From Guillardia theta CCMP2712 (lineage: Eukaryota > Protista > Cryptophyta), in NCBI RefSeq assembly GCF_000315625.1, contig NW_005434582.1, forward strand, positions 62,001 to 126,000: a stretch of 64,000 bases of DNA, written 5' to 3'. A model generated the notes under the pieces. The model saw nothing but the letters and a program-made list of their open reading frames with translations. It did not search any database and had not been told where the DNA came from. Both the position numbers and the translations under genes were made by a program. Of the stretch, positions 53,951-58,578 are shown piece by piece (within the stretch, counting starts at the first letter, position 1; every line of letters begins with the position of its first letter).

Positions 53951-54786
53951 GCTGCAGATGAGTCACGTCTGCGTAACATTCACTTGCTAACCTTGGATAT
54001 GCAACCAGGGAAGGGAAGGGGCAAGGCTTGAGAGCTCCCTCTGATCTACAAGGGTGGTCTATGTTGGTCGGAGGCAGGGTAGGGTCCAAAACTTGACCCC
54101 ATCGGAGAAGGGACTTTCACTGGGAAACAGGTGGGTCCAAAGCATCATAGTTTGAACAGGGGAGGTACCGCATAAACTATTTTGGTACCAGTTTTCCTAA
54201 CAGTACTCTATAAGTACCATAAAATTGGTACTGTTGGTACAAATATTTGCTACCAGGAAGTACCCTACCGCCTTAAACAGGTCCCAACCAATTTGAATCA
54301 GCTCCCAGCCGTCTGACCCACCCCAGACCCCAACTGCCATTTGCTATTCACATGTGTGGAAGGATACCCCCACAGAAAACTATTGGAAACCAGAGGGGTC
54401 AGTTGAGAGCGACAACGCTATGCAATCATGGCAGATACCCTTCTATCCTTTCAAGTGACTGAGTCTACTTCATAAATACTCTTACCCCAGAAGCCAATCA
54501 CCTACCTGCTCTTACCGTAGTACTTCGCTACAGCCGCTCATACATTCCGAAGTTCCGTCCGATCCGATCCGATCCGATCAGCCGGCCGGCTCACCGGCGG
54601 CGCGGCCCGCCCGGTCTGCCCGGGCCGCCCGCGGCCCGGCGGCCGGGCGCTCCGAGGTCGGGGGCCGCGCGCGACTCAGCCCGGCCGGCCCCTCTACAAA
54701 AACGCACGTGCACGAGCGCAGGGATCGGCGAGGAAGCGACCACATGGCCGCATGGCTTCTCGGTAGGTGACGCGCCGCCGCTCGTG

Positions 54787-56085
54787 ATGGCAGCCCCTCC
54801 GCAAGCCGCCTCTATGAGGGGCCATGACGATGGTGACCTTGGATGCCCGAGCGACGATGGGAGCTCGCGCCGAAGTGACAGACTGACGGCCAAGAAGTGG
54901 AGGGCAAGAGCATGGGCGCTAGGGAGGGTTATAGCGGAGACGGACAAACCTCAGGTTGTGAATCAAAGGATCTACTTCCCTCTCGAAGACTGTTTCCAGC
55001 AGCACATGCTCCTTTCGACGAAGAGATGGCGATGAGCCAGGTGAGATGAAGGATTCCTTTCCTCCTCCTTGTCCTTCTGGTTGTACGTGTGCCCGTGCTG
55101 TGTAAGAGGAGAGGAGGGGATGAAGCGGTTCTATACGGTCGAGACACTCGGATTATGCGGGAAAGATCTCAACACAGAATCGCAAGATAGATACCATGAG
55201 TGTGAGGCAGTAGGACCCTCGCGGATACTTCATGAGGCCGAGGGTTTTGAAATTGCTCCATACATTCTCATGAGCGATTCGGTTGCTGGTGCAGCTGTTG
55301 TTGCTGTCGTCGTTACAGTTGTTGTTTCTTGTTTCAATTCGTTGTTTTCTATGTTTGTCTTGTATCTGTGTCAGGCTCCGCGGGTTGCTCCCAATGAGGA
55401 TAAAAAAATCCAAGGCTTAATTACTGAGCGTTCGATGACGTTTCGATTTGACAAGCATATGTCTGAGGGATGCAACCCCGGAGCCTTGCTGTACTCTTGT
55501 TGCATATTCGAGGCGTGTAAGGCGTGTGAAAAATTATGACATGCCACGCAGGGGCGAGCAAGTCTGGTACAACATCCAAGTGAAAGAAAAGATCTTGGAG
55601 AACGCAGCCTGGTATCTCCTCCCCCTCCTTTCCTGGTATCTCCTGCCCACCTCCTCCTCTCCCCATCCCCACCTCCTTCCCTCCTTCAGTTCAGATCCCC
55701 TGCTCCGCTTGCTTTCCTGTGTTTGTTTTCTGCTCCCCTTCATGCATTCCCTTATGCCTCCTCTCCTTCCGCCCGATGCCGCTTACCGCGAGGCTGTCCG
55801 CTCGCCATGGTCAGTGTTCGAAAAGTGGCAGAGAAGGAAGTGACTGCGAGGGCACCTTCGCTACGCTTCCATCGTAGCCACAGGAATCTCGCGGCCCACA
55901 TGCTCCTTTGTGTGAACACCTTGTTCTTGCTTTTGCTCGTCCTCGTCCTCTTCCTCCTCCTCCTCCGCTGTTTGCTCACCGGATACCTCAGGGGCTATCC
56001 TGATCCTCGGCAAGGGCGAGAGAACATCAAAGGACATGTCACGTTCGCGACAGGCAAGGGCGTGAGAATAGAGACGGCAAGCTGA
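54787..56085 (+). CDS. DUF427 (NTP_transf_9) domain protein, candidate selenoprotein (exons 54787-55040, 55552-55611, 55992-56085; Sec TGA at 55033-55035; ~135 aa)
   Basis: GRVIAETDKPQVVNQRIYFP..HMLLSTKRWR-TGA-AR|GEQVWYNIQVKEKILENAAW|GYPDPRQGRENIKGHVTF..KGVRI matches DUF427 on both sides of the TGA; SECIS downstream. Confidence 0.85.
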
Positions 56086-56144
56086 GGATGATGAGAGAAT
56101 GCGAACAAACACTCCTAGAGTGCGTCGCATGCTTGAGATTCCTC
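56084..56144 (+). promoter_or_regulatory. Eukaryotic SECIS element (type II-like) in the 3' UTR
   Basis: Helix I GAGGA/UCCUC; AUGAG at 56091-56095 and UGAG at 56134-56137 form the quartet; 11-nt helix II AGAAUGCGAAC/GUCGCAUGCU; AAA at 56107-56109; mini-stem CACUC-CUA-GAGUG. Confidence 0.85.
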
Positions 56145-56304
56145 GAGACAGAGTTGTGAATGTGTAATATCGCTGTATCATCATGTAAGCTAGAGAAAGA
56201 AATGTATGATCTTGTAACAAACAAACATAAAGATAGATTAAATGTTGTGAGATAATGAATGAGAGTACACTGCAGAAGATTTCCAGAATTGCGCATCTTG
56301 CTTT

Positions 56305-58578
56305 TCACTGCTGGAATGCAGTGCTATTGCCATTATTCCAGTTCTGTCCGAAGATTCAGATTTCACAGACAACAAGGTTTGTATACTTTGAAGATAGAAA
56401 AGGCATGCAGAGGGATTGCAGGATGGGAGGCAAATGAAATCAAACAATAAGAATAAACAGAGAACGAGCAAAAGGAAAGGAAATGAAGGAAACAGCAGCA
56501 GGGGAGAGAGCAACATGCCGTGAGGATGGTTGCAATTGTGTGTGATTGATAAGAGTGATGATAGATATCCAGATGTTTCTTCTTCTCATGCTCTCACCTC
56601 TCTAGCCTCGTCACTTCCTTGCCCTCGGACCGAGTCGATGGTGGCGAAGGTTCCCCGGGCTGGCTGACTCTGAGCACCAGCAGCAGCAGCGGAGGAGGAG
56701 GAGGAGGAGGAGGAGGAGGAGGAGGAAGTATCCTCTTTGCTGTTGCTGGAGCCGAAGAGGAAGGAGAGGCCCCAGGCGATCCAGCCTTGCTTCTGCTGCT
56801 TCTGCTCCTCCTCCCGCTCAAGGACTATGAGCGCTGCGTTGGGGGTTAGACCCAGCTCCTTCCTGGTTGACCAGTCAATGGAAGGAGAGAAAGGAGGAAA
56901 GATTACATGGTCCTGTTGCTATGCTCCTTTCTCGTGAGCTCACGCTTGGGATAGGACTGAGAGGCGATCAGAGGCAAAGCAGGAGGAGGACAGGAGACAG
57001 GAAGGAGAGGAAAGAGATTGTACGAAGAAGATTGAGTTGAGAGGAGGCGAGGAGAGGGAAGAAGTGGAGAGGGAAGGAGAGAAGGAGGAAGATGGCAGGC
57101 AAACGAGGCAAAGGAAGCAAAGAAGGAAGGAAATAAGGAAAGGGCGCAAAAAGGAGACGACAGGAACAGGAGAGGGGAGGGAAAGGGAGGGGAGGGGAGG
57201 AGGAGAGGAGAGGAGAGAGGAAAGGACGGGAGGAGCACCTGTACAAAGATCAACTTCTTCTTGTCTGCCTCCACACTACCCGGCAGGTCCTGGACGAAAT
57301 CGAAGGCTCCTCCCAGCACTTCATCTGACAACAGCTGAGCGACTTGCTAACCCCAGCTGGTGCCCACCTGCTTCAAACTCTCGACGGACTGTCGAACCAT
57401 CGGCGAAACGAAACAGGAGGACGGCACAGGAGGACGAGGTCTGTCCGGTGCTCTTCTCCTCCGGCACGCTCGCTTGGGAGCTTGGCAAGGTTCAACTAGA
57501 TGAGGAGGAGGGGGAGGAGGAGGAGGAGGAGAAAGGAGGAGGAGAAAGGATGAGGAGGAGAAAGGAGGAGGAGGAGACCTGGAGGGTTCGGACAGTTTAG
57601 CTTTCTTGGTTTGATTCTCGTCCCTGCTCGCATCACTGAGATCAGAACAAGATACATCTCCATGCTGGAAGCAGAAGGAGCGGGGCGATGCAGAACACCT
57701 GTCCGCGTCATCTTGATTGTTCTTCTCCCTCATCTCCATCTGCCATGCCTCCCGTCATCTACAGCATCTCCACTCCTCCTCCCGCTCACCTTCTTACTCT
57801 CAACGCCCACCTCCTTCCTGTACCATGGCGGCGCGCACTCCAGCAAGCACTCGATCATCTGGGGACGAGGACAGGCATGTTCAGCAAGCATCCTCATCAT
57901 CTACTTCCTCCCACCATCGTGTCGCCGATCTTGACGTCATGGGTCTCGCACAGAGTCTTCATAATACCTCCATCCTTGTCCACCATCTGCAGCTCGTCTC
58001 AATCTTCTTGATATTGTCGCGTCCACAACAGACCTGAATGGTCGGAGTATGATCCACTTGCGTTGCCTGCCTCTCCCCTTCACTCAAGGTCTTCTCCTCC
58101 TCCTCCTCCTCCTCCTCCTCCTCCTCCTCTCCTCCTCCTCCTCTCCCTCTTCCTCCTCCTCCTCCTCCTCCTCCTCGACCACCACCTTCATTCTGCTCTC
58201 ATCCTCCTTCGCCTCCTCTCCACCAGCCGCTCCTCCTCCTCACCTTTGCATACTTCCCTCCCTCGCTGGTGTCGACATTCAGTCGTACTGCGACTACACA
58301 CCTGCACCATCACCATATTCAGCGCCATGTCGTCGCAGCATGTCGATCAGGAGAGTCTTGCTTCACCTTTCCATGATCTTGACGATGTCCTGGTTGCTCC
58401 ACAGAGTCTCCTCCATGCGCTCTACAGCCTCGTCGTCGAAGTCGCCATGGAGCAGAGCAAGAACAATCTTGTCCTCCTGCATCACGTACATCACCCTGTC
58501 GTCTGACCCGCTCGCTCTGACCTGGCCTGCGCACTCGAGCGCCTCGCTGAGACTATCTTTGAAGGAGATGGCGGACAT
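56305..58578 (-). CDS. UBXN4: UBX domain protein, UBXN4/erasin-like, multi-exon
   Basis: N-terminal FKDSLSEAL..LALLHGD..; UBX (RFADGSTVRREF, SYPKREL, ELGLTPNAALIV); hydrophobic GWIAWGLSFLFG; C-terminal NWNNGNSTAFQQ*. Confidence 0.78.

Follow-up and report, generated by a model that had tools for sequence, protein, structure and literature searches.

DUF427 (PF04248/COG2343), a domain of unknown function, is found in thousands of proteins from bacteria, fungi and algae; its structure has been solved (3DJM, from Rhodobacter sphaeroides) and left unexplained. MsrB1 (SelR) offers a described parallel, because its fold is a beta-tent like that of the DUF427 model, selenocysteine (Sec) and Cys interchange within its family, and its selenocysteine insertion sequence (SECIS) lies in the 3' untranslated region (UTR). 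The catalytic Sec of MsrB1 is situated near the C-terminus. Algal families such as AhpC_b (PMC7539508) offer another parallel: the eukaryotic form carries Sec, the nearest Cys relatives are prokaryotic, and public annotations are truncated at the UGA. Here we describe a DUF427 gene on the forward strand of a 64,000-nucleotide stretch of the cryptophyte Guillardia theta CCMP2712 (contig NW_005434582.1, positions 62,001 to 126,000; the whole stretch is called the window below), which is very probably a genuine selenoprotein gene with Sec at its UGA codon 83 (Table 1).

The window protein and the bacterial and cyanobacterial DUF427 proteins share the same domain from end to end, and the motifs Y-F-P, S-x5-[C/U], G-x-x-x-[YW]-Y, A-A-W-x-Y-P-x-P and I-K-G-x-V-x-F are common to both. 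The C-terminal half of the window protein matched 3DJM with an E-value of 5.6e-4, and its best plasmid match was to Picosynechococcus, with 40% identity. The two groups differ in the loop, in which the bacterial Cys is followed by P/S-W/Y-K-G whereas the UGA of the eukaryotic subfamily is followed by A-R-G, one residue shorter; the eukaryotic subfamily also adds introns, a 3' SECIS element and an N-terminal extension. In comparison with MsrB1, no sequence similarity is detectable, and the putative Sec of DUF427 would be located in the middle of the domain, at the tip of a hairpin, unlike that of MsrB1; DUF427 also lacks the methionine sulfoxide reductase motif and the zinc site (PMC4287342). 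The likeness to AhpC_b and similar algal families (PMC7539508) extends to the way in which they were identified, by a UGA/Cys alignment together with a SECIS element, although Sec-DUF427 is not of the thioredoxin fold and would add a family of another fold to the eukaryotic selenoproteome.

In the searchable literature, DUF427 or COG2343 was not linked to selenoproteins or selenocysteine in the relevant sense, and the family names that appear in the text of 'The algal selenoproteomes' (42 families; PMC7539508) do not include DUF427, a comparison that does not extend to the unnamed 'Hypo' family of that work. Membership of PF04248 and the eukaryotic recoding mechanism are each already known, and it is their combination that appears to be new, the three Ostreococcus 'hypothetical proteins' (PMC2375036), 'Hypo', the Aureococcus list and the Seblastian candidates being uncompared. 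A Sec residue at the one conserved Cys of DUF427 points to an active site, and to chemistry that could be tested, in this family.

Transcripts were obtained from one raw RNA-seq run and from the contigs of three other runs, mapped on 54400-56700 of the window. A first-pass annotation made from the sequence alone had noted that the open reading frame (ORF) stops at a TGA followed 5 nt later by a GT donor, and that two downstream exons continue in frame with the C-terminal half of DUF427. All of these coordinates hold: GCCAG follows the TGA, the GT donor is at 55041, the splice from 55040 to 55552 was found in three runs and that from 55611 to 55992 in all four (both GT..AG), and the joined exons are recognised by PF04248. 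Its expectation that the TGA is exonic was likewise confirmed by transcripts that retain the TGA and read on into both downstream exons; a single 650-nt contig (X11) spans all three exons, covering 54738-55037, 55549-55610 and 55991-56278, and the TGA is thus exonic in the mature mRNA. The spliced coding sequence of 408 nt comprises 135 codons in frame, of which the TGA is codon 83. None of the four RNA runs showed sequence differences at the locus, the first mate of the raw reads lay on the plus strand in nearly all cases, and in run X4 the word depth, a rough measure, of the spliced contigs was about tenfold that of the intron-entering ones. The exon 1 product begins with an N-terminal extension of approximately 42 residues, followed by the N-terminal half of DUF427 up to S-T-K-R-W-R-[TGA]-A-R, for which exon 1 supplies the first two bases of the Arg codon. 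The TGA is located only 8 nt 5' of an exon junction and has two precisely spliced introns downstream, which would be odd for a genuine stop. In the public annotation the protein has only the 82 residues before the TGA (P0001).

Table 1. Features of the DUF427 gene in the window, SECIS-shaped elements elsewhere in the genome, and homologous loci with the residues around the in-frame TGA.
Feature	Position or locus	Strand	Basis or sequence
5' leader of mRNA	54723..54786	+	RNA contig starts at 54723, 54738 and 54743; sequence
Exon 1, coding	54787..55040	+	ATG 54787; translation; PF04248 18 bits; end set by RNA joint
In-frame TGA, putative Sec codon	55033..55035	+	codon 83 of 135; on the DUF427 Cys column
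Intron 1	55041..55551	+	GT..AG; Arg codon split AG/G; joints in runs X21, X4 and X11
Exon 2	55552..55611	+	G-E-Q-V-W-Y-N-I-Q-V-K-E-K-I-L-E-N-A-A-W; translation and RNA
Intron 2	55612..55991	+	GT..AG; immediately 3' of the A-A-W motif; joints in 4 of 4 runs
Exon 3, coding	55992..56085	+	G-Y-P-D-P...G-K-G-V-R-I-E-T-A-S; true stop TGA 56083-56085
3' UTR to poly(A) sites	56086..56274	+	raw RNA reads with poly(A) ends, at 56259 and at 56274
Type II SECIS, predicted	56083..56145	+	RF00031 (SECIS_1) 25.1 bits; helix I begins inside the stop codon
SECIS-shaped match, thioredoxin reductase	G000:C9:797976-798038 (L015)		type II
SECIS-shaped match, thioredoxin reductase	G000:C115:159947-160003 (L016)		type II
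SECIS-shaped match, Rdx family	G000:C298 (L024 1677-1737)		type II
Homologue, AT-rich (32% GC) eukaryote	L028, L043-45		S-N-K-R-H-R-TGA-A-R-G-E-Q-[I/V]-W-Y-N-L
Homologue, ocean metagenomes	L029-31		S-N-K-R-W-R-TGA-A-[S/R]-G-E-Q-V-W-Y-H-V
Homologue, metagenomes	L032-34		S-D-K-R-W-R-TGA-A-R-G-E-Q-V-W-Y-H-V
Homologue, metagenome	L035		S-S-K-R-W-R-TGA-...
Homologue, metagenome	L036		intron just 5', then V-TGA-A-R-G-E-Q
Homologue, metagenome	L037		S-A-K-R-W-V-TGA-...
Homologue, Logan assemblies	L039, L040		S-P-K-R-W-R-TGA-A-R-G-M-Q-V-W-F
Homologue, metagenome	L042		S-P-K-R-W-R-TGA, then GCC AG/GT
Homologue, Sanguina aurantia (green snow alga, NCBI genome)	L038		S-F-K-W-T-TGA-A-R, intron, G-T-Q-H-W-Y-D
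Homologue, Logan assembly	L041		S-F-T-W-T-TGA-A-R, intron, G-R-Q-H-W

The N-terminal and C-terminal pieces match successive parts of PF04248, and therefore two halves of one DUF427 domain flank the TGA. The N piece scored 18 bits over profile positions 3-40, alone under the gathering score of 22.1 bits, and the spliced C piece scored 33.1 bits over positions 53-92, above it; orthologue P0188, in which a W was called at the TGA, matched in a single stretch over positions 3-92 with 43.1 bits. The short name of the Pfam entry, NTP_transf_9, was not used as evidence of function. In the DUF427 proteins of the Picosynechococcus and Burkholderia plasmids, Y-F-P is followed by 11 residues and then by S-T-x-x-T-T-C-[S/F]-W-K-G, and in the window Y-F-P is followed by 11 residues and then by S-T-K-R-W-R-TGA-A-R-G, which sets S-x5-TGA in register with the bacterial S-x5-C. 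An unaided MAFFT alignment of 22 sequences, with cyanobacterial rows from a search that returned only close cyanobacterial relatives, also set the TGA column on the Cys and placed a one-residue gap after it, so that the TGA falls on the conserved Cys, as had been claimed. The caveat attached to that claim, that the spacing of U-A-R-G is one residue shorter than that of C-P-W-K-G, is real; the shorter loop is conserved throughout the Sec subfamily and is a signature of it, with no misalignment. A word-based search with the N piece matched only the truncated product P0001 of the window. Within the genome itself, a PF04248 search missed even the window gene because its exons are too short for that route, and a protein search did not find a DUF427 paralogue.

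When the C part (50 residues) served as query in an exhaustive HMMER search, 49 hits were obtained, many of which are ORF fragments starting with (M/V)-W-Y-H a few codons 3' of the Sec column, and the DNA of several was then fetched. In every locus read, comprising 12 homologous loci verified at the DNA level (labels within L028-L045), an in-frame TGA occupies the identical column, and the flanks are conserved on both sides of it (S-x-K-R-W-R before, A-R-G-E-Q-V-W-Y after) in host genomes that range from 32% GC to GC-rich. The intron that follows the TGA in L042 is identical in place and phase to intron 1 of the window, and L039 and L040 contain an intron within one nucleotide of the site of intron 2. 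Two further homologues, fragments recognised at the protein level, come from Picozoa single-cell genomes. A profile of the N half retrieved 33 clusters; in 28 of the 31 new ones the ORF breaks off exactly after ...K-R-W-R or ...K-R-H-R, and in another, P0229, it goes on as ...K-R-W-R-W-A-R-G-E-Q, in which the W is a code-4 call of the TGA. The database entries met had no name or were labelled 'hypothetical' or 'DUF427 family'. Automatic annotation of the fetched loci and ORF clusters either splits these genes at the UGA or translates that codon as Trp. The N halves are 37-68% identical to one another and their hosts differ in GC content, which excludes the copying of one contaminant. No Cys form of the U-A-R-G subfamily was seen among the homologues found. 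Cys or TGA had been expected at this column in homologues, and it is Cys in bacteria and TGA in eukaryotes, a pattern that Sec/Cys family pairs typically show and that excludes a pseudogene. The true stop is TAG in L039, L040 and L042 and TGA in the window (56083) and in L029, L032, L035, L037 and L043; since TAG or TGA also terminates the same genes, UGA is not reassigned in them.

A hairpin of SECIS shape had been noted at the true stop, and it is here that the only RF00031 match of the 64-kb window is found, on the correct strand and within the 190-nt 3' UTR. Its parts are an AUGA core (56091-56094), a helix II strand of 12 nt, an unpaired AAA (56107-56109), an apical mini-stem of 5 bp and a 3' UGAG (56134-56137), and the core lies about 160 nt 3' of the UGA in the mRNA. 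The E-value of 1.6 refers to 4227 Rfam families and is equivalent to about 4e-4 per family for the window (1.6/4227). The unconstrained minimum-free-energy (MFE) fold of 56078-56152 has the canonical type II shape, with -22.3 kcal/mol and z = -2.4. A genome-wide RF00031 scan gave three hits only, the best two (27.2 and 24.4 bits) in the 3' UTRs of thioredoxin reductase genes, and one of these two genes ends ...S-G-C before its stop; another RF00031 match, of 26.4 bits, follows an Rdx-family (SelW/SelT-like) match at a distance of 66 nt. The window, thioredoxin reductase and Rdx elements share one layout, namely AUGA, 12 nt, AAA, an apical mini-stem of 3-5 bp and a 3' N-G-A-N. Because the elements that follow selenoprotein-family genes score 24-27 bits, the score of the window element is within the range of this genome, for whose selenoproteome the thioredoxin reductase and Rdx elements can serve as positive controls.

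Among the homologues, SECIS-shaped hairpins were recognised in two distinct orthologues (three loci), where AUGA-N12-AAA hairpins with SECIS-shaped MFE folds occur 82 nt after the stop in L039 and L040 and 73 nt after it in L042. A covariance model (R1) was built from the four known SECIS elements of this genome; it was judged too small and over-fitted and is not counted as support. It scored L039 at 18.1 bits (E 0.022), and the L039 and L040 elements had E-values of 0.02-0.04. No claim is made for the candidates in L037 and in Sanguina (L038), which were too weak, and the fold of a sequence 3' of L043 was not that of a SECIS. Elsewhere in the genome, a SECIS-shaped element at G000:C107:204324-204386 (L017 1501-1563; 21.5 bits) has AUGA-N12-AAA and a strong helix I, and no selenoprotein ORF was recognised upstream of it.

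The machinery for Sec insertion was searched for in the genome (87 Mb, 669 contigs), in which it had been expected. One tRNA-Sec was found (72.9 bits; called SeC with anticodon tca by ARAGORN), together with SepSecS (423 bits) and SelD (290 bits). Two matches to selenoprotein families each contain one in-frame TGA, a glutathione peroxidase (G000:C23:677350-677673; L019) and an Rdx-family protein (G000:C53:169707-169913; L021); an Rfam SECIS was not found within their 1.5-kb flanks. The proposal that the UGA of the window gene is read as Sec is thus supported by the transcripts, by the homologue column and by this machinery.

The fold was modelled with AlphaFold2 on a cyanobacterial Cys homologue only (P0002). 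The model has a predicted local distance difference test score (pLDDT) of 97.9 and matches the DUF427 structure 3DJM with Z 16.7, followed by the Mis18 Yippee-like domain (Z 10.2), the cereblon CULT domain (Z 6.1), human MsrB1 (Z 6.0, root-mean-square deviation 3.3 over 83 residues), the RIG-I C-terminal domain (Z 5.7), Mss4 (Z 5.0) and Gfa (Z 4.2). According to the model, the DUF427 fold is a beta-tent, which agrees with the fold proposed for this family (PMC4287342). Cys45 is the last residue of the strand 36-45, and the three residues after it (S-W-K) form the turn into the following strand; the corresponding turn of the Sec subfamily has two residues (A-R). A second Cys, that of Y-F-P-x-E-D-C, 13 residues upstream of the Sec column, is present in the window protein and in 23 of 30 homologues.

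These data are consistent with a mechanism in which the 3' UTR of a three-exon mRNA opens with a type II SECIS hairpin, which would recruit the genome-encoded Sec-insertion machinery to the UGA approximately 160 nt upstream. Codon 83 would then be decoded as Sec in a single-domain DUF427 protein of 135 residues, and the Sec would take the place of the single conserved Cys of the family, at what the model predicts to be an exposed beta-hairpin tip. There, Sec or Cys could be the reactive nucleophile of a thiol- or selenol-dependent redox or transfer reaction, and the semi-conserved Cys of Y-F-P-x-E-D-C may resolve the Sec/Cys intermediate. We infer from the same data that selenium is incorporated and that the residue is catalytic; a redox or metal role of DUF427, as was suggested in the first-pass annotation, may follow from this.

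Several results weigh against this selenoprotein interpretation. The raw-read run was strongly 3'-biased, with one read over junction 1 and four over junction 2, and the SECIS score of 25.1 bits is under the Rfam gathering score of 35. With filters off, R1 gave the window element a score of 10.9 bits (E 2.7), level with junk hits, and with default filters it matched nothing in the window. Rfam scans found a SECIS in no homologue locus, and a hand scan of the two-domain and AT-rich homologues found none either, several of their contigs ending right after the gene. The Cys column is not invariant, being Cys in about 11 of 17 diverse DUF427 members and Ser, Asp or another residue in the rest, so that a catalytic role would not be universal to DUF427, and the E-D-C cysteine is missing in 7 of the 30 homologues.

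Among the alternatives, a protein that does contain Sec but uses it in a structural or metal-binding way, as a non-catalytic relic of the second zinc knuckle (C-P-x-[CK]-G) of the beta-tent, is unlikely, though it deserves consideration. The insertion of Sec comes at a high cost, and selenoproteins almost always use the residue for catalysis in a redox enzyme, which speaks against such a use; moreover, one Cys or Sec cannot form a tetrahedral site. The DUF427 Cys is at a hairpin tip in the P0002 model, and the hairpin tips of beta-tent relatives (Mis18/Yippee, cereblon CULT, MsrB and the RIG-I C-terminal domain) do bear CxxC zinc knuckles; the zinc site is, however, systematically absent from DUF427 (PMC4287342).

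Decoding of the UGA without selenium, either through a reassigned code (Trp or Cys) or through SECIS-independent read-through by a near-cognate tRNA, is improbable. Gene calls under code 4 do yield full-length proteins with W at the column (P0130, P0188 and P0229), and a SECIS was not found for the distant homologues; nevertheless, TGA also ends the same genes, as listed above, and the genome encodes tRNA-Sec, SepSecS and SelD as well as genes of selenoprotein families, among which two contain an in-frame TGA. The stop is, moreover, kept at exactly one column, which is Cys in the bacterial relatives, the classic Sec/Cys pattern, and SECIS-shaped elements accompany the three closest forms. The weakest alternative, a recent pseudogene or truncated product of 82 residues whose Cys codon (TGT or TGC) became TGA and whose downstream exons are decaying, would need only a single base change and is in line with the public annotation (P0001) and the sub-threshold SECIS, but is highly improbable given that the TGA and conserved downstream coding recur in very different genomes, with 12 or more sequenced loci and some 30 additional ORF clusters, that no Cys form of the subfamily was seen, that both introns past the TGA are spliced precisely, and that the 3' UTR here and those of two distinct orthologues carry a SECIS-shaped element.

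If the selenoprotein interpretation is extended to the homologues, a wider proposal emerges, which we regard as evenly poised between acceptance and rejection. It holds that Sec-DUF427 is an unrecognised eukaryotic family with obligate Sec in several distant lineages (the alga of the window, chlorophytes, Picozoa, an AT-rich flagellate and uncultured marine protists), mostly fused to a Cys-rich domain of about 170 residues, that the Sec marks the reactive centre of DUF427/COG2343, and that the family may have a part in the redox chemistry of thiol/selenol-imidazoles or of sulfoxides. The last element is suggested because bacterial DUF427 is co-encoded with some ergothioneine/selenoneine-type sulfoxide synthase genes, 5.7% of which it adjoins (PMC13674229, Table 1; 2026). 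This thio/seleno-imidazole gene neighbourhood is a lead to the substrate and nothing more.

The fused form, which most other lineages have, was observed in L029-L035 and L043 (proteins P0132, P0133, P0139 and P0188), where Sec-DUF427 is followed by a low-complexity linker and the C-terminal domain. This domain contains C-H-[TQ]-N-C-[GS]-R..Q-G-T-[AC]-F-L and K-P-G-R-M-C-Y-F and is absent from the window protein; it had no Pfam match and no significant match in the genome of the window (E 0.46). The N-termini of L029, L032, L035, L037, L039 and L043 bear E-W-x-x-R-K-x-x-H/R-x-x-D-P before DUF427, a motif that the extension of the window protein does not have. L043 itself lies on an intron-poor metagenome contig of 78.9 kb (sample label 'chicken_3', 32% GC) that also encodes GDI, radial spoke protein 3 and a PI3-kinase in addition to the two-domain Sec-DUF427, and in relatives of its organism the gene caller applied the TGA=Trp code.

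Around the window gene, a short run of tandem CCGAT units (54555-54580) occurs just 5' of a segment with very high GC content (54580-54690), which itself precedes the start of the transcript. The 5' leader contains two upstream ATGs (54735 and 54744) whose reading frames both meet a stop after no more than 4-8 codons, and some transcript contigs start 3' of the first of them. On the other side, a convergent gene on the minus strand lies within 56343-56700 and has an intron at 56344-56597 (CT..AC joint); one X4 contig runs from the DUF427 exons into this neighbour, indicating that the 3' ends of the two genes are very close or overlap.

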